Notes: generated by a model not told the origin, from the letters alone. DNA of 63,815 nucleotides, filler included, from Hyphochytrium catenoides (GCA_900088475.1; 10 parts of 10 records of this genome joined end to end with filler, not necessarily neighbours in it); one strand, 5' to 3'. Counted from the whole stretch's first letter, positions 1 to 14,680 are shown. Numbers and translations are program-made.

Positions 1-1440
1 ACTGGCTTTGTGTTGGTGATACCCGTCGGTCTCCCCACCTCTCTCCGGCTGCAGTCGTTCCCTCCATAGTCACTCACCCATGGGTGGGAACCCCCACTCC
101 GACCTGGAGGGCGACAACCCTCTGTTCTTCTTCCAATATAAAGCCAGTAATGCGTTTCTGGGCCCTCCTCCTGTGTCCCCCTGCCAACCCCACAATACGC
201 CTCCCTCGCTTTTTTTATTCTACACAAAGTAAACAAATTTTATTTCTTCTTAGATAAAAAAGCCTTCTCTCTGTATAGACGGCATGCTCTGTGATAAACC
301 TGTCTTTCAATAAATCTCACACACAATGACCATCTTCTTTCCGAGAAAGCTTTATTTGGAAAAAAAGGCAGTGACAAACATGATATCATTATTATATAAA
401 AAGCCGAAATAAGCTTCGGTGGGGTCTTCCGGTCCTATTCTCAGGTAACTGTACAGTTTCTATTAGTTTTGGTTCCCTGACCCTTTACGCACAACCCATA
501 AAATTTTAGTCCACAAGGAGAAAATGTCGCGGCCATCGCAACAGCCTCGTCCTCCTCCCAACAAGCTCTCTTCCTTCATCTGGAGACAGATTCTCAGGTT
601 GCAGGCAGAAGGAGAAGAGATCTCGACCCATTGTCGTCCCATTGTTTGGCTGACTGGCTGAGAGTTGAGACCAAACAAAGAAGGCGGCTGCTGCTGTGTG
701 ATCATCAGCTCTTAAGGGAGAAGATAGCTTGATGATGGAAGGTGCGGTGCGTAAGCGTCTTCTTACTGCCACCATCGTCTGCTTCCTCTTCTCTCCTCTT
801 AGCTTGCCGGACAGGAGGTAGTACAGACAGGCTGGCTGGCTGTGAGGAGGGTAGCCTGATGAGTCGCCAGTGCTGGTTGAAGAAGGAGGTGGCTGAAGAA
901 GAAGAAGACCTTTAATAATGCTTAGGAGGTTAGGGCTTCTTCCTAGGCTTTTTTTAAAATATATGTTCCCGTTCTAATATGATGAATGGAGAGCTCTGTC
1001 GTTCGTCGGCTGTTGTCTTCCATCATTCATCATCAACCTAAGTAACCTCCTTCCCTACTTCTTAACTATCATCCACTGAAAAGACGACGAGAGCCCAAGG
1101 TGCCGCCTCCTCAGCGCGTTATTATACTACCTCGCGGGTGATGAGGCGAGCAAGAGTGATTAGCGGTAAAAAGAATATAATAGTAGAGAAAGCGGTCGTC
1201 AGTGACTCGCCAGCATTTATGGGTCCGATAAGCAGCCAACAGGAGTGAGAAGATATACTTGAGCGCGTAGGTTGCCAGGCAGATTCAGTCGTCAGGCTCC
1301 CCGTACATAGACATAAGGGCTACGTAGACCTCCGCGCACCGCATCGCACATCACACTACTGGACTGAAGCACTTCTCACGGCAGCAATGCTTAATGGAGC
1401 TTCATCGTCACGGCAACAATTGAACCACCGGGTGATCACA

Positions 1441-3048
1441 ATGCAGTTGTGGATCAAGCTGCTCCTATCCATCTTCTGTTTCAGTCACAAAGCCGGACCT
1501 GGACTGCCCTTACCTATATCCATTCCTCTACGCTCAAGAGCATCAATCGATGGAGCCATTAGTCGAACATCCATCAGAGGCCCAGGCAACGATAATCGAC
1601 TATCTGTCGCTCCTCCATGGAGGTTGCGATCTTTTAATGCTCTAGAGCAGCAACTCGCGGCTGGAGGAGGTCCGAGCTCCGTCCCTCTCGACTCTGACCC
1701 ATTTGGTCTCATCTTAGTGGGCGAGATTGGCGTTGGTGGCACGTCATTCCCTCTCCTCATGGACACCGGCTCCTCCGACATTTGGCTCAATGGGACGCGA
1801 GAAGATACGGAGCTCTCCAAGAAGGTCTTCTCAAGTTATGGTAAGGACTGCTGTGCGTCAGGGAAATGCTGCGGCAGTGACAGTTGTTCCGCCATGGACC
1901 GGAAGCATCATACCTTGGCCACCTGCGGTTTTCATATTGAGTATGTCTCTGGGGCTGCGAGCGGGACGTTAGGAGTTGCTTCTGCAGTGTTTGGACAGCA
2001 GAATATCGGAGATATCCAGCTCGGCCTTGGCACCCTGGAGGACCCTCAACTCCGTGAGGTTATACCCGGCATCTTAGGTCTGGGCTTCCCGATCTTGGCT
2101 TCTTTTACAAAGCCCACGTTGGTCGATGTACTGTCAGAGTTCACCTTCAAGCTCACAGGCGAGAAGGCTCTACTTCTCGGTCATGTCAACACCGCAGGGC
2201 CTGGCAACTCGTCCGCGAGTGGCAGCAGCGGTGTAAGCCTTCCATCGACACTCCAATGGCTGGACGTTGCCCTCAAGCCAGTAACAACCACGGTCGGTGT
2301 CGTGAACGCCTGGTGGAGCGTTACACTGTCTAAGGTCAAGACTAAGGCTGCCGGTCAGAGTGAAGACGAAGTGGTTGTCCCTGAGATTGCCAATCGCCCC
2401 GTCATTTTCGACTCAGGAACATCCTTAGTTGTTATTCCTCCTAACGACCTCAACATACTAATCTCCTCAATACTTCCCAAGGACTCGACTAGCCCTTGCA
2501 AGAAAATCTCATGTGGATCGGCAAGTGCGACCAATATGTACGGCTGCACCTCTCTGGACAACCTTCGGAAACTTACTCTCTTCTTTGGCGATGGCAATGC
2601 TAGCCTCTCTGTCACTCCGGAGCAGTACTCGCTGCGCCATGCCTGTCCCGAGATGACTTATACTCTAGTCTTTGCAGCCTTGGACGGAAAAGAAGAAGAT
2701 GATGTCCATGGGTGGCTGGTGGGCATGGGGTTCTTAAAGAACTTTCCATATATCAAGCATGATGCCGCCGCCCGCACCATATCGTTTGCTATTGACCCGG
2801 AGGCCGCTCGTGGCGCAACGAAGGAGGGTAACAGCAGCACTGGCAATAGTAAGGCCCCTTCATCAGCTACTGATGATGATGAGCCATTGAAAAGCAATAC
2901 TGACGGAGGAGTTAACCTTGCTTTAGTGATAGCTGTTGCCGTGTCCGGGAGCATCATTGTAGGACTAGCGATAGCGGGTGGTGTCTGGTGGTGGGCAATG
3001 CGTAGAGAGAGGATGACAGGAGAAGTGCCACTCAATTGTGAAAGCTAA
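1441..3048 (+). CDS. Pepsin-family (A1) aspartic protease with signal peptide and C-terminal transmembrane anchor; intronless
   Basis: Both catalytic motifs are present (LLMDTGSSDIW, VIFDSGTSL), plus flap Tyr (IEYVSGAASG), GILGLGF and WLVGMGFL. Met 1441 begins a signal-like MQLWIKLLLSIFCF (the ORF opens at 1387). TM helix LALVIAVAVSGSIIVGLAIAGGVWWW. Confidence 0.92.
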   Translation: MQLWIKLLLSIFCFSHKAGPGLPLPISIPLRSRASIDGAISRTSIRGPGNDNRLSVAPPWRLRSFNALEQQLAAGGGPSSVPLDSDPFGLILVGEIGVGGTSFPLLMDTGSSDIWLNGTREDTELSKKVFSSYGKDCCASGKCCGSDSCSAMDRKHHTLATCGFHIEYVSGAASGTLGVASAVFGQQNIGDIQLGLGTLEDPQLREVIPGILGLGFPILASFTKPTLVDVLSEFTFKLTGEKALLLGHVNTAGPGNSSASGSSGVSLPSTLQWLDVALKPVTTTVGVVNAWWSVTLSKVKTKAAGQSEDEVVVPEIANRPVIFDSGTSLVVIPPNDLNILISSILPKDSTSPCKKISCGSASATNMYGCTSLDNLRKLTLFFGDGNASLSVTPEQYSLRHACPEMTYTLVFAALDGKEEDDVHGWLVGMGFLKNFPYIKHDAAARTISFAIDPEAARGATKEGNSSTGNSKAPSSATDDDEPLKSNTDGGVNLALVIAVAVSGSIIVGLAIAGGVWWWAMRRERMTGEVPLNCES

Positions 3049-4485: not shown

Positions 4486-7400
4486 CTAGGAGTGTCGACG
4501 ATTCTTCAAAATGCTCTTGGTTCCACTATGTGAGCCCTCTCTCTCCTTGTCTTTGTTACTGACACGCGTGGAGGAAGATGAAGAGAAGTCTATTGACTTA
4601 AAGTCTCCCGCCCCTGCTATCTCCTTTGAGTTTGTCTCCCTTAGCCACACAGGCAGATCCTCCTTCTTCCCGCTGACCTCTGCGCTAGGAGCAGATGAAG
4701 GGGGAGCAGGGAAGGGCTCAGCCTCCAGAGTCTTTCCTTCAGCGTTAGGAGCTGAAGAGGTCCGCATGGCACTGATTCGTCTCACATGAGACGCCGTGCT
4801 CATATTCATCTCGTCCTGCTGAACGCTGGATCTCTTCCTCCTCGGAGAAGAGGAAGCGGAGGGGTTTATCTCTCCAGCCGTTATAGAAGAGCCCCGCTCT
4901 CTCAAATCTAAGGCAGACAGCCGTTCAGAGAGCTGTGGCATCAGCCTCACAACCAGAGGAATCAGCACCATCCTAATGCTCTGGTCCGTCCCAGCCAAGA
5001 AGCTACTAACAGCATCTGGACCGGTCATCTCACAGGCCACTGCAGTCACATCGGTAGCCAGTTTGGAGATGAGGGGAGACACATGCCGAAGAGCGTGTGC
5101 TACGAACCCGAGAACAGTGTCCAGGGCCAGAGACGAACCGGAAATTGGCAGAGAAAACTCCCCAATTAGGGCTAAAATCAGTTGCAATCTGGCGCTTAGC
5201 TGCTGAGCGACAGCAGAATACTTTCGAATGGCAGCCTTCTCTTCGGTCGTTAATCTGCCCAAAGGCTGGGACGGAGAGGGGGAGAGAGGAGGCTTCTCTG
5301 AGAAGTCCAAGGGGGAGAGAAGACACCTCGCAACAGTGTTTAGCGCTACTTCGTGTTGCCGCGAGAGACGAAGAAGGACGTCATAGCATGCGCGTCGCAA
5401 GCGAACACTTTCATCCCCTGTTCTCTCTACTATGGTCTTTACCATAGAAGAGAGAATCATTCGACTCTCCCAGCTCTCCCAGGGAAACGCGACGGTAGGA
5501 GAGAGGGCGCTGTTCTGACTATCCACTGCTTGGAGGAGGTCAATGGCCGCCAGGCGCACTCTTGGGCTGTCGTCCATGAGGACCTGGAGGTCCAAGGAAA
5601 CGGCGGAAAGACAGTGGTACAAGGAAAAAGAGAGAGAGAGGAAGAGAGAGACGCGCAGACGAACAGAGAGGAGAGGAAATGGGTGAAAGGGATATTGGTA
5701 AGAGAGAGCCATCAGGTCAACCTTGTAACAGGCCAGTGGAGGATGGCATACATATACAAAGCCAGACAGCTGTATGAGATAGGAGCAAAAGTACTTCCGT
5801 ACTAAAACACGTTGAAGAAAGGACAGAAGCAGCAAAGCTTGAACCTTAACGACAAGGATTGCTACAGCCTCAACTTGCAAGCAACTCCAGAAGCTGGCGA
5901 ACCCGATTTATGGTGCATGAAAGAAATAGCAAGCCGACATGGAGGGAGAGAGACCCACAGAGGAACAAGGTACTCGAGGAAGTACATGCTCAGAGGCGCC
6001 GAAGGAGAGAGATGCCAAAGGCATGTCAAAAACGACGAGACCAGAAGAATGTCTTTACCTGCTTTACAAGCAAACAACAAAGCTCCCATGCTTTGCCATC
6101 GGTGTTTCGTACAGGAGGTGCGTTGCCCATTCCTGCTATCCGCTCGGCTGCCCTCCACAGCCCCTCTCGCCGCTGTTGCCAGGAGGAGGAGAGAAGAAGA
6201 GACGTATCTTCTTCTCCTAGAAACATGACCAGGCGTGCACGGTCTAGGCTTTGAATCTTGGAAGCGCCAGAATTGGACTTGCGACTGCCATGAAGGAGGA
6301 ACAGAATCATATGACTAGGGGTCAGCTAACACTAAAATGGGAAGCAACCGAAAGGATTCGGTGAAGGCAGTGCCGGAGTCACAGTCAGAGCCAATAGCAC
6401 ATGATATGAAGAGAAGAGAGGCATAGAACGGAGTGCGCAGGAGAAGGATGAATGGAATGAGGATATACATACCGCTCCTCTTTTGTTGGTGAACTAACTC
6501 CTACGTTAATGTGAAGTGTAGCATCCCTCAGCGCAGCTTGAGTGGATGGTTTAAGGTCTCTCACAGCCTCCTGAAGATCAAATGGCTGACCATCCTCCCC
6601 ATAACCAGTGAAGAGACCTCCCTGAGGGATTATATCAGTACGATGAGGAGACCTTTGACTCACAATGTCTCTGGTGAGTCAGATGTAGGGAGAGTTCGAG
6701 TACAAAGTGAGTAAGAGGAACATACAAAGAAAGGCGATAGAGAGGTCCTCCGCGCACAATGGCAGAGAATGTCTGAGTCCCCTCATGCCCTTAGGTAATA
6801 AAGCCATTTGCAGCGCTTAAGGAATGAAAGAGAGAGAAGTTTCTGCCGCGAAGTGTAAGATGACGGCTAGTGGCTGCTGAGGCACAAATCCTGACAAAAA
6901 ATGATGTTGACTCCGTCTACCTGTGTCTTCTCATAGATTTTCGCATAAGTCGCAACCGCGGCATTCCTTACATCCACATGCTTGTGGTCCAGACAAGGGA
7001 TTACCAGACCCATGATCGCAGACAGAGAGAGACGCATCGACGGGTGTGCTGGTAGCAGAGGGAACGTAAGGGACTAGGAACTCTCCATCTCTCCTCCATG
7101 ATGCCGTGTAACATTCTCCGCCCCTTCTCCAACCCACTGCTACCTTGTTCCCCGCTTGCCCCTCTTTTGTTTCTCACTGTAACCTTCCCGTCCTCACCTG
7201 CCGCTGTTGAACGAGAAGGGCCAAATTGTTCAATCAGCTTTCCTAGAAGGGAGAGACGAGAGACAGTGCCAGCTGCGCTTTGTTGCAGCTGCTCGTCATT
7301 AACGTTAAGAACAGCGTTCGCTATGTTGGAGGCTCCTATATCCGGGGATAGGGCAAGGGAGAGTAGTGCTTTCTCACTATCTTCTCTTAGCCTCTGCTTT

Positions 7401-10400
7401 GAGTCAGATAGCTTGCTGGCAATGTGAGAGAGCAGAGAAGAGAGTGCTCCTCTGTAAAGAAACTCTCTACCCCCCTGTGCAATTGTCGGGAGATACTCCT
7501 GGACAATCGCTTGCAGGAGAAGGAGGGAGGACTGATAAACTCTTAGGACGACATCCCCTAGTCCCCTTTCAACGACTTCTGCCGCCACTGTGACAACCTT
7601 AGGCTCTCCGGCTTTCAAGGCAGAGATGGAGAACTGCGTCGGGAGAGAAACCCCTCTAGCGGTAAACACAAGGCCAGCCTGAATCTGCACATGAAGAAAA
7701 GAATGTTGAGATATAGGCGGGCAGGAAAGATAGGGGAGAGAGAACGCCATTGACAGAGAACGTAGGAGACCGCGGACAAATAAGATAAGACTTGTGCTGG
7801 AGAGTCTTGGCAGCTTGTATCGTTTTTGACAGAGCAGAGAGATGATAAGTCATTCAAGAAAAAGAGAAAGAGATACAGAGTCAGAGGAAGAGAGGGATAA
7901 GGTTTTAAAACTCGGGCAAGAGGAGGTGGAAAGTGGGAGAGGGGGAATTATACCTCTCGAATCGCGCTCTCTCTGACAGACCAGTTCTTATCCATCAGAC
8001 AGCGCGCGATAGGATCGCCAAATACTTCCATAATATTTTTGCCTTCTGCCATCTGAGAGGCGGTCAAAGGGTTCGCATACGGCAGCGGCTCTAGCTTCGA
8101 AAGCTGGCCAACGTCTACGTATCACTGATGTCAGCATAACCAGGAAAAGAGTCTAGAACTTAAGGTGAACCTACCGAATGTGCTGTCCTCAGAGTTCTGA
8201 GAGACGTCCGCCAGGGCTGGGCGGTGCTTGGTCGTAGAGGCTGTGGTGGGACGAGAACAGGTGCCTGCAGGTCCAAGTTGCAGAGTGAAGGAGACAGTCG
8301 TTAGGGGTCGCTAGGGCTCGGCCAGGCGAGCTGAAACCAGAGATCAGTACACCATGGGAGTGATTAAACAAAGGCCAAAGTGAACGGAACAGAGGGCGGA
8401 CTGACCAGGTCGAGACCCAGTTTTGGGCCTCATGCCTGTCCCTGGACGCTCTTCAGGAGCCCCTCCGCCCATTCTCATAGACGTTCCAGGCCTTGTTGCG
8501 GTGCCCGGTCGCATGGAGGTGCCAGGCCTAGCCGCGGTACCAGGTCGGGTGGCCGTGCCTGGTCGAACTTCTGCGAAGTCAAAGTCCTCGAGCTCTTCTC
8601 CGAGCGCTGCTGGCTCGACAATGCCTGCCTCCTAGACCGATCATATGAGAAGACCAGAGAGAGAAAGAAAGATTGAGAGAGTATGACCCCAGTGAGAGCA
8701 AGAGAGAGAGAGGGAGATATCGTGAGCGAGAGAGTTAGAAGTGAAACATCGAACAGCAAAGAAGGGAGACAAAATGTTAAGACAGCTATTTTATAGAGCG
8801 CAAGGCAAGGTGATGAACTCAAAGATGTTGAGAAAGAGAGAGTAACTAGAAACGGAGGAGATTCTACACCAAAGGAAGGCCAGCCGAGAAAGCTTAAGCG
8901 TAATAAAAATCATGGGAGGGAGATTACTTACAATGAGCCGAGCAAGGATTCTCTTTCGCTTCTCAGTCTTGAGGTTATCTACGTACTTCATCGCTGGAGC
9001 TCGGCATAGCTGAGAGATGCCGCAAAGAGCAGGGTAGGAAAAGGGATCAAGACACGTTACGTGAGCGGGGCGGATAGGGGAATGAAGAAGAGCGAGACAG
9101 ACAGATAAAACAAGAGAGAGGAAAAGGAGGAGCGTGACCAGCATTCCCAAAACGTGGAGAGATTCTCATAGCAGCGGAGCAAGCCATCGTCATGTCCCCA
9201 ACCCAACATTTGGTGTTCGCGCCAGCGGTCCGTCCACTGCCCGACCATAGACAGCGAGCGAGCGAGCAAAAAGGACCGACATAAGGGAGTCTCTTACGAC
9301 GGACCTTGAAAATCTCTCCGCACAGCTCTGCGGCTACTTTCCTTACTGCGCTGTCTTTGTGCTCAAAGAGAGGAATTGCCATGTCTAGCACTGGGATAAG
9401 AGGAAGCTTGAGGAAAGACTTGGAAGACGAGGAGTGAGAAGGTGAGGAGCTCCTCTCTCTATCTTCAACGCCAAACTCTGTCACCAGCTTCACAAGTACC
9501 CCAAGCCTAAGCACCGGAAATATTAGTGGTAGGAAGATGTATGAAATCGCAGGGCCAAGGGCGAGAAGAGTTGGACTCGAAAGAAGGTAACTCTAAACAG
9601 GAGCCAGAAGCGAATGAAAACGGACGGGATAGAGCTAAGGAGATAGCTGAGGACAAAGGTTTATGCTGCAGCAAAGAGAGGGAAGATCAGGGGGACTCTA
9701 ACTTGTTAACCGAGACTTCTTTCAGATGAAGAAGGAACCCGATGCCACTCAAAGGACCAGAAGGGAGATAAATAGGCTAGCGCGTCATTATAAAGCACAA
9801 ATATTAGGGACATGCGAAGGGAAGAAATGGCTTCGGCATAAGTAAGAGGTAGAACCAAGACCGATTATCAGAGAGGACGAAGCGCCTCCTTACCTTGTCG
9901 CGATCAAGATGCTGCCATCCCCTGGCGTGGAGGCTTTACAAAGGGCGTTAAAGAGAAAGTAAGGACCGAACGGCGCGGGTTGCCGGGCAAGAAAAAGAAG
10001 CGCGTCCTCTGTGACAGTCCGAGTCTTTGGCTTAGTGTCGCCAAGTCTAATCAATAGTTGAATGGACAGAAATCAGAATCATTTTGGCGGCTTAAAGGTA
10101 TATATACAGCGGGAGACTGAAAAAGAGAGAAAGTGATGGGAACAGTATAACCAAGCAACGAATGAACTGATGTAAGGGGAAGAACGGATGAGAGCAAGAG
10201 AACAGCGAAGCTCTGAAGCACCGGTATGTTCTGGCGGTGTGTTCTTAGAAGAGAGAAGTCACTTCAAAAGACATGCTGGTCGTCGGCATCCCCAAAGCAC
10301 GAGGGAGCAAATAGTAAATAGACGATGATACGGAGGAGCATGTGTTTCAAGGAAGAAGGAGAAACATATATGAATGCCATCCCGTCGGTATTCAAATGGC

Positions 10401-13226
10401 AGAAGGAAGAGGACGAAAAGGAATATTCTTACCTCTTGCTAATAAGCGGCATGAGCTCCGCTACCGGAGCCGCTAAGGATTCCATGGGTCCTGCTACCGC
10501 CTTCCCACTCATCCCTGACCTAGCGGTGCGAGAGCCGCGGGGAGAAGTCTGTTCACTCCCCTTGAGCGAAAGAACAGCTTGTTGCAGCAAGGAAAGCCCT
10601 GCCGTAAACTGAGACAGAGAGAGAGCATACTGGTCAGCCTGGCAATGCTGGAACATCTATGGATATGGAAAGTGGCCTGAGAAAGTAACCTTATAGAGAA
10701 GAACTTCTATCCTTAACCTTTTTGGAGTAGGCACGCCAAGCAAGTACTGGACACCATAGACTTGCGGAGAAATGACAAGAAGAAACTAGACGGGATTGAA
10801 AATGTGAAGGGCTTGTTCCTCTTACCACGTGGATCACCCTGTCCGCCATGGCAACTCTCAGCGCACTGACTACGGCTTCTGTCACTTCTCTCTCACGGCC
10901 AGCAAGCTGGAAAGCCTCTCCACCCTTGGCGGCAGGGGCATCACTCCTCGGAGCGGTACCTTGTCTAATGAGAGTCTCCATTCTCTGCAGCGCCACCTCT
11001 CGAGGGCTCCACGTGTGTGAGAAGATGCATCGAGCCAAGGGCTCTCCAAATACAGAGATAATGGCCGCCGCTGCCTTCTTGTTTGCCTCTGTGTCCACCG
11101 CGCGAAGTCAGGAAGAAGTAGTATGAGCAATAGTATGAGGTGGTAGCAACTCAAGGACAAAGCAGAACCGGAATGGAAACAAGGGTAAGCAACAGAGAGG
11201 AGGAAATGAGCTGTTGATAGGCATCGCAAACGTTGAGAACAAGATAGAAGAACCAAGGTACCTGTAAGCGGCTCTGCATAGGGCAGTTCCGCAGTGTCCT
11301 CCTCCTTAGTAGCTGTGGGTTCAGGATTCCTGGTGCTTTCTTCTTCCTCTTTCCTAAGTTCTGAGTCTAAGTGAAGCAGGTCTCCGCCATTTTGCTTGTC
11401 GCTGCTGAGCTCTGAGAGGAGGCGGACGCGGATGTTCTTCATCATCACCGGCTTGATGAATGCAAGCTCTGCAGCCATTATCCGGTCCACTTCGGCGATC
11501 AGCTGCTCGCGACTGAAGTCCGTCTTTCCCTCTGTGGCAAGTATCGGGTAACGAGAGTGAAATGGTGAGCGGGAAGATCAGCGGTAATATTAAAGAGAAA
11601 GCGCCACGGTTCGGAGGAGAGAAGAGAAAGAGAAGATTATCTATGAAGGCAAGACGATGGAGAGCTTAAGACATTCTCAGTCGCAGAACGCGAGGGGAGA
11701 AAGAGAGAGAAAGAGACAAAGAGATACTGAAGAGAAATAGAGGACTGACTACTACATCTTACCAAGGATCTTGGCCGAGATTGCGGACGTCAAGATATCA
11801 GCAGCATGGTCTCTGATCTTGTTATTTGCATTGTCAACCACTGGCTTCGTGACAGACAGAGCTTCCTCATAGCTCAGCCCGTGTTTGCTGTGGAGCTTGA
11901 ACTCTCTAATGAGATAGTTCAGCACTCGGAGACGGACAGCGAGGGGACGCCAGTTGGCTCCCGTCCCACTACTGCTCTCTATGGCTTTCTTCATGCTCTT
12001 GAATATGGCAGAGGCGATGGGTCTTTTGTGTCATTGAAGAGAAGATAGAAGAGGAACGATGTGTGTGAGAAAGAGTGAAAGACAGTGAGAAAGAGGAAGA
12101 GAGAGGCGCGGAGAGAAAGAAGAGAGAGAAGAGGTTAAGAGTACAAGACAGAAAAAAAGAGAAAGTGAAAGAAGATGGAAGAGAGAGGGGAGAGAGAGGG
12201 AAAGAAAGATAGAGACAATAGAGACTGGCCGAGAGAGTCAGTTAGCAGGAAAACTGGTTGAGAGGACCGTGCTTGAGCGGCCTTAAAAGATCCATCCATA
12301 CCTGGGCCCGACCGTAGATGAGCGAGAGAGAAAAAGCAGTCCGTTGACAGCGTCATTGACAATTCTCTCTTGTGCCTCTCCTCCGCGCCGCAACAGTGCC
12401 TCAATAACACTCTCTAGTTCTGGGCTGGGCTCTCCTTTCTGCCAGGAAGCTTCAAGATCGATGTCAGCGGGGGTAAGGGAGGAGAGAAGGTGCGTCAAGC
12501 GAAAAAGAAAAACTTCGCCAAGAGAATGTGTGTGTGAGAGAGAGAGAGAGACAGCGAAAGAGAAAGAATACGCTAGTGACAATCTTCAGAGGCCACCCTA
12601 GAGAGCGAGAGACTTTAGAAGCGCAGGGATGAAGTTGCGGAGGTCTAACGTCACCGGTTGACAGAGGATAGAGAGAGACACACACAGTGTGGCAGATAGA
12701 GAGAGAGAGAGAGAGAGTTGGCGCGAGGGAGAGAGAGAGGGAGGAGAGGACGAGCGAGGTGAACGATAAGCTGTTAGGTAATCTGCCTACCAGAAAGCTG
12801 GGAGAGATTCAGGTGCTTCCCGCTGAAGGTCGCTCTAAGTAGCGGGACCGTGCGATGAAAGACCTGCGTCACCTTGTCTCCCATCGCCGCCACCAGCAAA
12901 TGGCAATAAGCTTCAAACTTAGTCTTCAAATTCAGAGCTCCATTGAGCTGAGGAAGCAGCGCCTCTGCTTGTGCTAGTGCCGCCTCTCTATTCTTCCAGT
13001 CTCGAGAGCCAAAGAGCCCCATAATCTGGGGTCCAAGCACACTGAGGAGCAGCTGCGGAGCTTTCTTCGCAATGGCCTCAAAATCTTCGGGCGGACCTTG
13101 TGGCGCATCCTCAGTGCCAATGCGGTCTCCGACCCCGGAGAGCACGCCACCATGCTCGGTCTTTGGCTTTTGGAGCTCTGCTTGCTCAGGCATCTCGCCA
13201 CGCAGCGCAGCGGGGGAGACTTCCAT
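4486..13226 (-). CDS. Large multi-exon HEAT/TOG protein with four CEP104-like TOG domains
   Basis: Four HEAT-A motifs: LFGSRDWKNREAAL (~13000), CIFSHTWSPREVAL (~11010), CLMDKNWSVRESAI (~7985), LLSSSWQQRREGL (~6180). Also LPYAEPL/LPYANPL leaders, GDKVTQVF/ADRVIHV/GDVVLRVY, LGDTKPKTR/LSDSKQRLR/TGDESVRLR and WRPLAVRL. Exons are flanked by GT-AG. The frame stays open upstream of 13226, so the start is uncertain. Confidence 0.8.
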
Positions 13227-13470
13227 TGGACAATGCGATGAACTGGCCTCTCTCTCGTAGATAATGCTTAGCTTTTGGTCGGCGGGAGACGAATGGAAAG
13301 AACCATCGGCGAGAAGGGCGATCGCTTTGCTCTTGGCGGCAACAAGCTGCTTTCCCGGACGGCGAAGAGGGAATAAATCTTCAAAGAAGCCCCGCAGGTT
13401 GCAAAGAGACAGCGCCGCTGGCGATTTCTACAGCTCCTGAATGAGATCGCTATCTCTAAAGCCCTTGTCT

Positions 13471-13502
<32 letters not shown>

Positions 13503-14000
13503 GCCGAGCGGAGTTCCCTCCTTTCCTGTGTCTCCCTCTTCTCTCTCCCTGTTCCAGCACCAATATCTTCGTGTCTCTTTGTAAGTCTTCATCTGTAGCA
13601 CGTCGTTCTCTCTCTCTTNNNNNNNNNNNNNNNNNNNNNNNNNNNNNNNNNNNNNNNNNNNNNNNNNNNNNNNNNNNNNNNNNNNNNNNNNNNNNNNNNN
13701 NNNNNNNNNNNNNNNNNNNNNNNNNNNNNTTTCATCCGCTCTATCTTTCTCTCCTGTGACCCTTGCGAGTCCTAATCTCTCTCTCTTGCGTTGATTCCCA
13801 GATCCTTAGCCCGATAAACTGACGTTTCTCTCTCTACCTTCTACCTTCTTCTCTCTCTTTTTCTCTCTCTCTCTCTGTTGTGCTCTTTCCTTTCCCTCTC
13901 TCTTTCTCTCTCTGTTGTGCTCTCTCCATTTTGTTCTCTCTCCTCTCTCTGGCTCTCTCTCTGTCCCACTTTCCTGTCCTGCACTTTAAACCTCTCCCAG

Positions 14001-14680
14001 GTCTCTTCTTCTCTATCATCTTCCTCAATGTACAACTCTGTCTATGAGTCGTTGGGCTTCCTCCCTCCTTTCAAACAGAGGAGCAGGGGTCACCGTGACC
14101 TGTTGGAGTTTGTATGGGCTGCCGGGGAAGAAAGAGAGACGGCCGTGAAGAGACAGATGGAGAAACATGCCAGAGATGAACTGAAAGAGGCGAGAGTAAG
14201 GGTTGTGGGGCCCATGGCTACGGCAGAAGACATTGAGGTACTTCTCTCTTGACCCTTTCCCTTCTCACATCTAGTTTGTAGGCAGAGGCTGAAAGGGTAT
14301 AGTCTCTTTCTCTCGCACTCGCTGATTCGTTTCTCTTTCGTCTTCCACCATTCTCTATCTCAGTTCATTTCCCTCTACTCTTTCGCTTCTCTCTCTCTCT
14401 CTCTCTTTCTTCACTCTCCTCTCAACTCGTTTGCACGTCCAGGATGAGGCTACAGGGAAGGTGCGTCAAGAAGAAGTTGAGCACTTTTTGAAGCTCAGAA
14501 GAGAGAGGAGGCAGAAGGCAAGGAAAAGAAGAGCTCAGGAAGTTGCTCTAGAGAACGTCATGGCAAGAAAACGTTTAGAAAACAAGGAAGAAGGAGGAGA
14601 GGCTTCCTCTGCGTTACCCTTTGAAGTCGAAGTAAAGGCAGAAGAGAGAAAGGTCCTACGTGGCTGGTCTAGAGCAAGAG
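14001..14680 (+). CDS. Partial two-exon hypothetical protein (14001-14237, 14443->14680), charged/coiled-coil, truncated by linker
   Basis: ctcccag acceptor, GAG|gtac donor and tccag|GAT acceptor join in frame (AEDIE|DEATGK). Confidence 0.5.

Follow-up and report, generated by a model that had tools for sequence, protein, structure and literature searches.

TOG domains are modules of roughly 220-250 residues built from six HEAT repeats, A to F. Arrays of such domains are the main known cellular route for adding tubulin to microtubule ends or for stabilising those ends, and the array classes named in the literature with which we compare our locus are XMAP215, CLASP and Crescerin. The activity of XMAP215 is described as depending on a basic region in addition to several TOGs (Widlund 2011, as cited in PMC5222566), and Crescerin, discovered through its similarity to CLASP TOG1 (PMC4642858), has been reported across ciliated eukaryotes (PMC4642858; PMC9236146). 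The TOG of CEP104 binds tubulin 1:1, and in solved TOGs the HEAT-A tryptophan and the HEAT-C loops belong to the tubulin-contacting face (PMC5222566); the CEP104 and MEKK1 TOGs are mutually close and share Arg-rich C-terminal helices (PMC7474687). The gene described here lies in 63,815 nucleotides of Hyphochytrium catenoides DNA (GCA_900088475.1; ten parts of ten records of the genome joined end to end with filler), which we call the window and from whose first letter positions are counted unless a contig is named. It is predicted to encode a single protein with four CEP104-type TOGs and runs along the minus strand from an ATG at 13226 to a stop codon at 4486-4488, exactly the span marked by an earlier reading of the window made without database searches (hereafter the sequence-only reading). 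We estimate a probability of about three in four that this gene is the H. catenoides orthologue of an uncharacterised family, usually with ankyrin repeats followed by four TOGs, whose array was already present in a common ancestor and whose role would be multivalent binding of tubulin or microtubules.

Four separate sets of minus-strand exons within this span match the CEP104-like TOG family of Pfam (PF21040) above its cut-off; at the level of open frames, the Pfam scan covered ten, nine of which match PF21040, five of these beyond the curated cut-off. When the genome was scanned in six frames with the same family, 6 of 10 matches fell on the contig that carries this gene (our genome-wide scans covered 61 Mb in 4,759 records). 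A family hidden Markov model (HMM), seeded partly with the H. catenoides protein's own four TOGs, finds four full-length TOGs in the spliced model, at 209-244 bits each. The HEAT-A tryptophan is present in all four, as WKNRE, WSPRE, WSVRE and WQQRRE, and neither it nor the next arginine varies in TOG1-3 of 11-12 orthologues. Both are likewise invariant in five aligned TOGs from CEP104 candidates, namely four single-TOG proteins of CEP104-like length and the CEP104 fragment of the same genome. The HEAT-C loop is retained as GD..R.R in TOG2-4, and the pattern GD.K.R.R is conserved across orthologues in TOG2 and TOG3. Two copies of a leader motif complete the picture: LPYAEPL at residues 364-370 (approximately 11268-11288), before TOG2, and LPYANPL at residues 770-776 (approximately 8064-8084), before TOG3. 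LPYAEP(L/I/V) stands about 11 residues ahead of TOG2 in 9 of 10 orthologues with four TOGs, and in Cantina it stands ahead of TOG3 instead; more broadly, oomycetes and Picozoa have the motif before TOG2, and some members have it before TOG3 or TOG1 as well, and it is absent from the partial metagenomic members P0001 and P0006 and from the CEP104 candidates. The four HEAT arrays, the tryptophan in each, a later D..xR loop in most of them and the two YA(E/N)PL leaders had all been picked out by the sequence-only reading, and all are found in the spliced model.

The segments between and after the domains differ in character. The TOG1-TOG2 linker is 84 residues long and acidic (isoelectric point (pI) 4.5), the TOG2-TOG3 linker 140 residues and basic (pI 9.5), and the TOG3-TOG4 linker 42 residues and basic. 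The central one includes six to seven RPGT(A/S)x repeats (8406-8631, minus strand), partly encoded by a 36-nucleotide tandem repeat at 8476-8559, and its basic character could allow it to bind the microtubule lattice. In TOG1-3, HEAT F is succeeded by a conserved segment, with Arg and Lys abundant in the copies behind TOG1 and TOG2. The tail at the C-terminus is rich in Ser and Arg and shows no Cys/His pattern, and no SxIP motif occurs in the 1,491-residue model.

From their sequences and from a modelled fold, we assign the four TOGs to the CEP104/MEKK1 subtype rather than to that of Crescerin, CLASP or XMAP215 (fold and database queries used single exons or orthologue proteins, and the joined model was used for local alignments and trees). 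Searched with phmmer against the PDB, the TOG3 exon returned the CEP104 TOG as its sole match at E <= 1e-3 (3e-5), and the TOG part of the Picozoa relative P0002 returned CEP104 first (2e-13), with the MEKK1 TOG as the sole other match at that threshold. A TOG2 profile built from ten homologues, which aligns with residues 28-239 of the CEP104 TOG chain 5jo8, matched CEP104 at 2.3e-24, MEKK1 at 1.2e-18, CLASP at 5e-7 and Crescerin TOG2 (5dn7, the sole solved Crescerin TOG) at 0.063; for a TOG4 profile, the corresponding values were 9e-6 for CEP104 and 0.014 for 5dn7. For the fold, TOG3 of the closest homologue stood in for the H. catenoides TOGs: AlphaFold predicts a paired-helix array (predicted local distance difference test score 85), and the ten best Foldseek matches to this model are all TOGs, with MEKK1 (6whb) at 7.5e-8 and CEP104 at about 1e-6 (template modelling scores 0.65-0.69), CLASP and XMAP215 TOGs at about 1e-3, and 5dn7 in 30th place. 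PF21041 gave one sub-threshold match (16.5 bits) on a single exon, and PF12348/CLASP_N scored low or not at all. The CEP104-type label proposed from the sequence thus agrees with PF21040, phmmer, the profiles and Foldseek, and in the last three no one-to-one match with Crescerin (as represented by 5dn7), CLASP or XMAP215 TOGs was seen.

CEP104/FAP256 has the same TOG subtype: PF21040 is the best Pfam match, and the CEP104 TOG ranks first or second among solved relatives in the sequence, profile and fold comparisons. In architecture the two proteins differ: a jelly-roll, a coiled coil and a C2HC Zn-finger array accompany the single TOG of CEP104, and all of these are missing from the protein described here, which has four TOGs. 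The cryptic TOG of MEKK1, the closest match by fold and second-best by profile, is likewise single and sits in an animal protein that is both kinase and E3 ligase, with no array. The Arg-rich C-terminal helices of both resemble the often Arg/Lys-rich segment after HEAT F in the four-TOG protein. A separate gene, G000:C896:15080-19985 (minus strand), is the genome's true CEP104: a jelly-roll (PF21038), a TOG (PF21040) and a Zn-finger array (PF21039) follow one another on one strand. Genome scans matched PF21038 on C896 and, below threshold, on C4064, and PF21039 on C896 and weakly on C79; neither gave a match on the four-TOG contig, in line with the sequence-only reading, which had seen neither domain there. 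With XMAP215/Stu2 and CLASP the protein shares several TOGs, here predicted to bind tubulin, and basic stretches of the kind that bind the lattice; it differs from them in its weak or missing PF21041 and PF12348 matches, and the genome separately encodes a CLASP-like protein on C12 and an XMAP215-like one on C4285.

An exhaustive protein search with the TOG3 exon returned 44 proteins at E <= 1e-3, the best of them 32% identical, and the leading matches are 1,000-2,600 residues long with three to five PF21040 stretches each. They come from Picozoa, Cantina marsupialis, Aphanomyces, Globisporangium, Pythium, Phytophthora and unnamed metagenome or Logan contigs; by the family HMM, ten of these relatives have exactly four TOGs. 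Most relatives start with about 200 residues of ankyrin repeats, and the full combination of ankyrin plus four TOGs is found in Aphanomyces, Globisporangium, Phytophthora, Pythium, Picozoa and one Logan contig. No ankyrin repeats occur in the transcript-derived Cantina member. Compared with family entries such as Globisporangium ultimum K3WLG3, Aphanomyces stellatus A0A485L4X7 and Picozoa EP01045_P010820, the H. catenoides protein has the same four PF21040 TOGs in the same order, orthologous position by position, and the leader before TOG2; it differs in that the ankyrin front part of most of them was not found for it, and per-domain identity is 27-40%. The source annotations call these proteins hypothetical or "TOG domain-containing protein", and our literature searches found no paper that describes the family or mentions its accessions. 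In the Phytophthora nicotianae (P0014, annotated "AGC/PKC protein kinase") and Pythium oligandrum (P0010) models, WW and protein-kinase domains precede the ankyrin/four-TOG part; these are either real fusions or merged neighbouring genes, and may be annotation fusions. Look-alike searches returned generic TOG/HEAT clusters only, and the look-alikes proposed by a language model were ankyrin-armadillo proteins, which share 143 features with the query, too few to suggest kinship. PF28295 is among the precomputed domains of the Cantina protein (P0004), for which a word-based protein search found no relatives.

The mechanism that we consider most likely from this analysis is multivalent capture of tubulin combined with tethering to the lattice at microtubule ends. 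Like the TOGs of CEP104, XMAP215 and CLASP, each of TOG1, TOG2 and TOG3 would use the face formed by the intra-HEAT loops to bind one alpha-beta tubulin dimer. The basic linker and tail would keep the chain attached to the microtubule lattice, and for the divergent TOG4 we would expect contact with lattice-like tubulin or with a partner. The combined outcome would be tubulin concentrated at microtubule ends, or ends that are stabilised. The likely site would be the zoospore's flagellar or basal-body microtubules, given that the protein shares its TOG subtype with CEP104, which acts at the ciliary tip, and that all identified carriers of the family are flagellates. The microtubule polymerase or ciliary-tip regulator proposed in the sequence-only reading remains a hypothesis. 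Zoospores of H. catenoides bear a single anterior flagellum.

The age and the integrity of the array can both be judged from the relatives. In maximum-likelihood trees of 61-65 TOG domains (one quick, one careful), each H. catenoides TOG groups with the TOG at the same position in other taxa: the TOG4 clade unites all 11 same-position domains (support 97/80 in the careful tree and 98 in the quick one), TOG1 is sister to oomycete TOG1 (92/85), and TOG2 and TOG3 fall within their own position groups (80-93). Each H. catenoides TOG is most similar to its same-position counterparts elsewhere, at 27-40% identity, as against 20-26% pairwise among the protein's own four, and placing these four in one clade costs 189 log-likelihood units and is rejected by the approximately unbiased (AU) test (p = 1.4e-24). 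On these grounds the four-TOG array predates the split of its stramenopile, Picozoa and uncultured-protist carriers. The sequence-only reading had instead proposed an array evolved independently by internal duplication, and this part of it does not survive: that the array arose by recent duplication of a CEP104 TOG within the H. catenoides lineage would fit the shared CEP104 subtype of all four domains and the position of CEP104 TOGs among the array TOGs in an unresolved backbone, but the collinear four-TOG orthologues in oomycetes, Cantina, Picozoa and others, the grouping by position and the low internal identity make it extremely improbable. A tree including CEP104 and XMAP215 TOGs, as that reading had suggested, thus groups the domains by position, on a backbone that stayed unresolved and with no bona fide Crescerin in the sample. 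Owing to its long branch, the XMAP215 outgroup ended up among the TOG2 domains, which leaves the tree effectively unrooted, and we therefore make no claim about the oldest TOG, the order of duplications or descent relative to CEP104. The same relatives bear on whether the locus is one gene. Two or more adjacent genes (TOG1-2 and TOG3-4, for example) could have been wrongly joined in the predicted model, the more so as the exons of the TOG2-TOG3 linker are short and of low complexity and oomycete annotations sometimes split or fuse the gene (P0060 and P0061 are fragments of it, and the Phytophthora and Pythium WW/kinase models are possible fusions). In tblastn comparisons, however, oomycete proteins are collinear with the exons of all four TOGs and with all linkers between them, including pieces that align with each TOG2 exon. 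Residues 400-572 of Aphanomyces P0007 align across 11952-11266, the TOG1-TOG2 junction; P0006, P0059 and P0007 align through 8631/8274-7951, from the central linker into TOG3; and Phytophthora P0014 aligns to 5586-4474, up to the end of the frame. Single proteins from at least six taxa are collinear over every junction, among them the Cantina transcript frame and metagenomic P0001, which is 1,329 residues long on a contig of just 5,145 bases, and the frame is kept by 16 of 16 introns. Mistaken joining is very unlikely on this evidence, and because orthologous proteins are collinear across every junction we read the locus, on the predicted model, as a single gene carrying all four TOGs.

If the gene is single and the array old, it could still be a divergent stramenopile orthologue of Crescerin/TOGARAM1/CHE-12/SHF1, acting in cilia. 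The gross architecture is the same (TOG1-TOG2, a basic central linker, then TOG3-TOG4 in one chain), both families occur in flagellated eukaryotes with regulation of axonemal microtubules as the expected job, Crescerin has been reported across ciliated eukaryotes in the two accounts cited above, and a search of the rest of the genome turned up no clear Crescerin gene. Against this stand the comparisons with 5dn7 (for the TOG2 profile, 0.063 as against 2e-24 for CEP104; 0.014 for the TOG4 profile; rank 30 by fold) and the low or missing CLASP_N scores, given that Crescerin was found through likeness to CLASP TOG1. Most members of the four-TOG family also have N-terminal ankyrin repeats, which the Crescerin accounts (PMC4642858, PMC9236146) do not mention, and CLASP_N-type TOGs on C621 and C369 are still candidates for the genome's Crescerin. 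We accordingly regard the shared layout as a resemblance only and orthology with Crescerin as quite unlikely. One could also suppose that the domains keep the TOG shape as HEAT scaffolds but have lost tubulin binding, so that the protein would be an ankyrin/HEAT adaptor for something else. Some TOG-like domains, such as the CLIP-ID of CLASP, do not bind tubulin; the HEAT-C loop of TOG1 and the tryptophan of TOG4 are degenerate, and the ankyrin-armadillo look-alikes give a weak lead in this direction. The invariant HEAT-A Trp and Arg of TOG1-3 and the conserved basic HEAT-C loop of TOG2-3, kept among distant taxa, are nevertheless residues of the tubulin face of solved TOGs (PMC5222566), and loss of tubulin binding seems to us improbable, if less so than the other alternatives.

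Several points weigh against the reading of the gene as an orthologue in an old family of tubulin-binding arrays. The HEAT-C loop of TOG1 is degenerate and the HEAT-A tryptophan varies among the TOG4s of orthologues, and we infer tubulin binding, localisation and any effect on dynamics alike from sequence comparison. The link with flagella is drawn from about a dozen taxa, all of them presences. Crescerin entered the comparison through its TOG2 (5dn7), and the trees contain TOGs of no bona fide Crescerin. The exons, and with them the 5' end of the model, are predicted from homology and splice-site fit, with three ambiguous places that leave the domain count unaffected: the acceptor of exon 2 (12449, 12434 or 12512), the donor of exon 13 (7198, 7144 or 7135, all phase 1), and exons 15 and 16. 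The ankyrin module was not found in the 1.45 kb upstream, which includes an N gap, nor clearly elsewhere in the genome, where a scan for it gave generic ankyrin matches only (28-38% identity). The upstream region, 13232-14680, is GA/CT-rich and of low complexity, with the N gap at about 13600-13730, and no coding frames were found in this 1.45 kb. Because the module was not found, the gap is present and the contig (14,680 bases) ends 1.45 kb upstream of the ATG, the model may lack 5' exons; ankyrin exons, if they exist in the H. catenoides gene, would lie beyond the low-complexity and N-gap region or beyond the contig end.

The H. catenoides gene looks like a new member of an uncharacterised family that itself seems to be a new version of the TOG-array theme. 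A broader proposal, which we offer as tentative and rather less probable than not, is that ankyrin plus four CEP104-type TOGs defines a further, undescribed class of TOG-array regulator, older than the stramenopile/Picozoa split, which would act at the ends of flagellar or basal-body microtubules by covalently linking several CEP104-like TOGs of the kind that CEP104 is thought to assemble by oligomerisation. The array is built from the CEP104/MEKK1 subtype, known in solved structures only from single-TOG proteins, and the family offers a natural test of what arraying such TOGs does. It is also an unstudied candidate for the zoospore flagellum machinery of oomycetes, major plant and animal pathogens in which gene tagging and knock-outs are feasible.

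The features of the gene are collected in Table 1. On the minus strand, 13226-4486 consists of numerous short open frames with CT/GA-rich stretches between them. We assembled the model from frame-compatible GT-AG pairs, the sequence around doubtful sites and tblastn of homologues; its 16 GT-AG introns are 60-475 nucleotides long, every exon junction is in frame and there are no internal stops.

Table 1. Predicted features of the four-TOG gene (window positions; HMM, family hidden Markov model)
Feature	Positions	Strand	Exons	HMM match in model	Basis and remarks
Whole gene, 1,491-residue model	4486..13226	-	17 exons		GT-AG fit; orthologues collinear across every inter-TOG junction
TOG1	11763..13226	-	1-3: 13226-12791, 12449-12302, 12022-11763	residues 54-271, 209 bits	PF21040 (12801-13055 and 11797-12000) and HMM; 53-residue acidic N-terminus in front
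Post-TOG1 helices, acidic linker, LPYAEPL leader of TOG2	11262..11531	-	4		Orthologue alignment; conserved leader
TOG2	9305..11088	-	5-8: 11088-10826, 10608-10433, 10046-9894, 9506-9305	residues 375-630, 218 bits	PF21040, 49.9 bits on exon 5 (10820-11080, plus weaker pieces); HMM; tree
Central linker	8175..9009	-	9-11: 9009-8932, 8631-8406, 8240-8175		Helix rich in Arg/Lys behind TOG2, followed by RPGT(A/S)x repeats of basic character
TOG3 with LPYANPL leader	6921..8114	-	12-14: 8114-7954, 7684-7198, 7048-6921	residues 781-1009, 244 bits	Strongest PF21040 match of the four (7948-8040 and 7208-7615, 72.7-72.8 bits)
Post-TOG3 helix and short basic linker	6473..6570	-	15		Splice-site fit and likeness to post-TOG1 and post-TOG2 segments; least certain exon
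TOG4	4927..6284	-	16 (6284-6059) and first 219 codons of 17 (5583-4927)	residues 1063-1305, 211 bits	PF21040, 44 bits (5290-5595, plus weak piece 6026-6310); HMM; tree
Ser/Arg/Lys-rich C-terminal tail (about 146 residues, pI 9.8) and stop	4486..4926	-			Composition; Phytophthora alignment to frame end

Convergent with the four-TOG gene lies a single open frame at 1387-3048 (plus strand, 553 residues) for a eukaryotic aspartyl protease (PF00026, 73.7 bits), for which a word-based protein search found no relative at E <= 1e-10. An HSP90 encoded by a single exon of the genome shows 84-85% identity to oomycete HSP90s and roughly 80% to those from other stramenopiles. A coccidian apicomplexan origin, which the CT/GA-rich introns had first suggested, is rejected: scans for AMA1 and SRS domains gave no match (these two families matched none of the control genomes either, so the blanks carry little weight), and the HSP90 is closest to oomycetes. 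Elsewhere in the genome, a large HEAT-rich open frame of 1,131 residues is followed by a CLASP_N-type TOG (G000:C621:9549-14327, plus strand), and a CLASP_N fragment lies at a contig end (G000:C369:36837-37082, minus strand); from their sequences, they may be Crescerin genes or second members of the CLASP family. A further separate gene, G000:C2429:29745-31821 (minus strand), carries two or more PF21040 TOGs behind an N-terminus that is acidic and rich in Ser and Glu. Proteins with two TOGs of CEP104 type are also found in Diplonema ambulator (P0023) and Diphylleia rotans (P0024), and together with the C2429 gene they may form another unnamed family.

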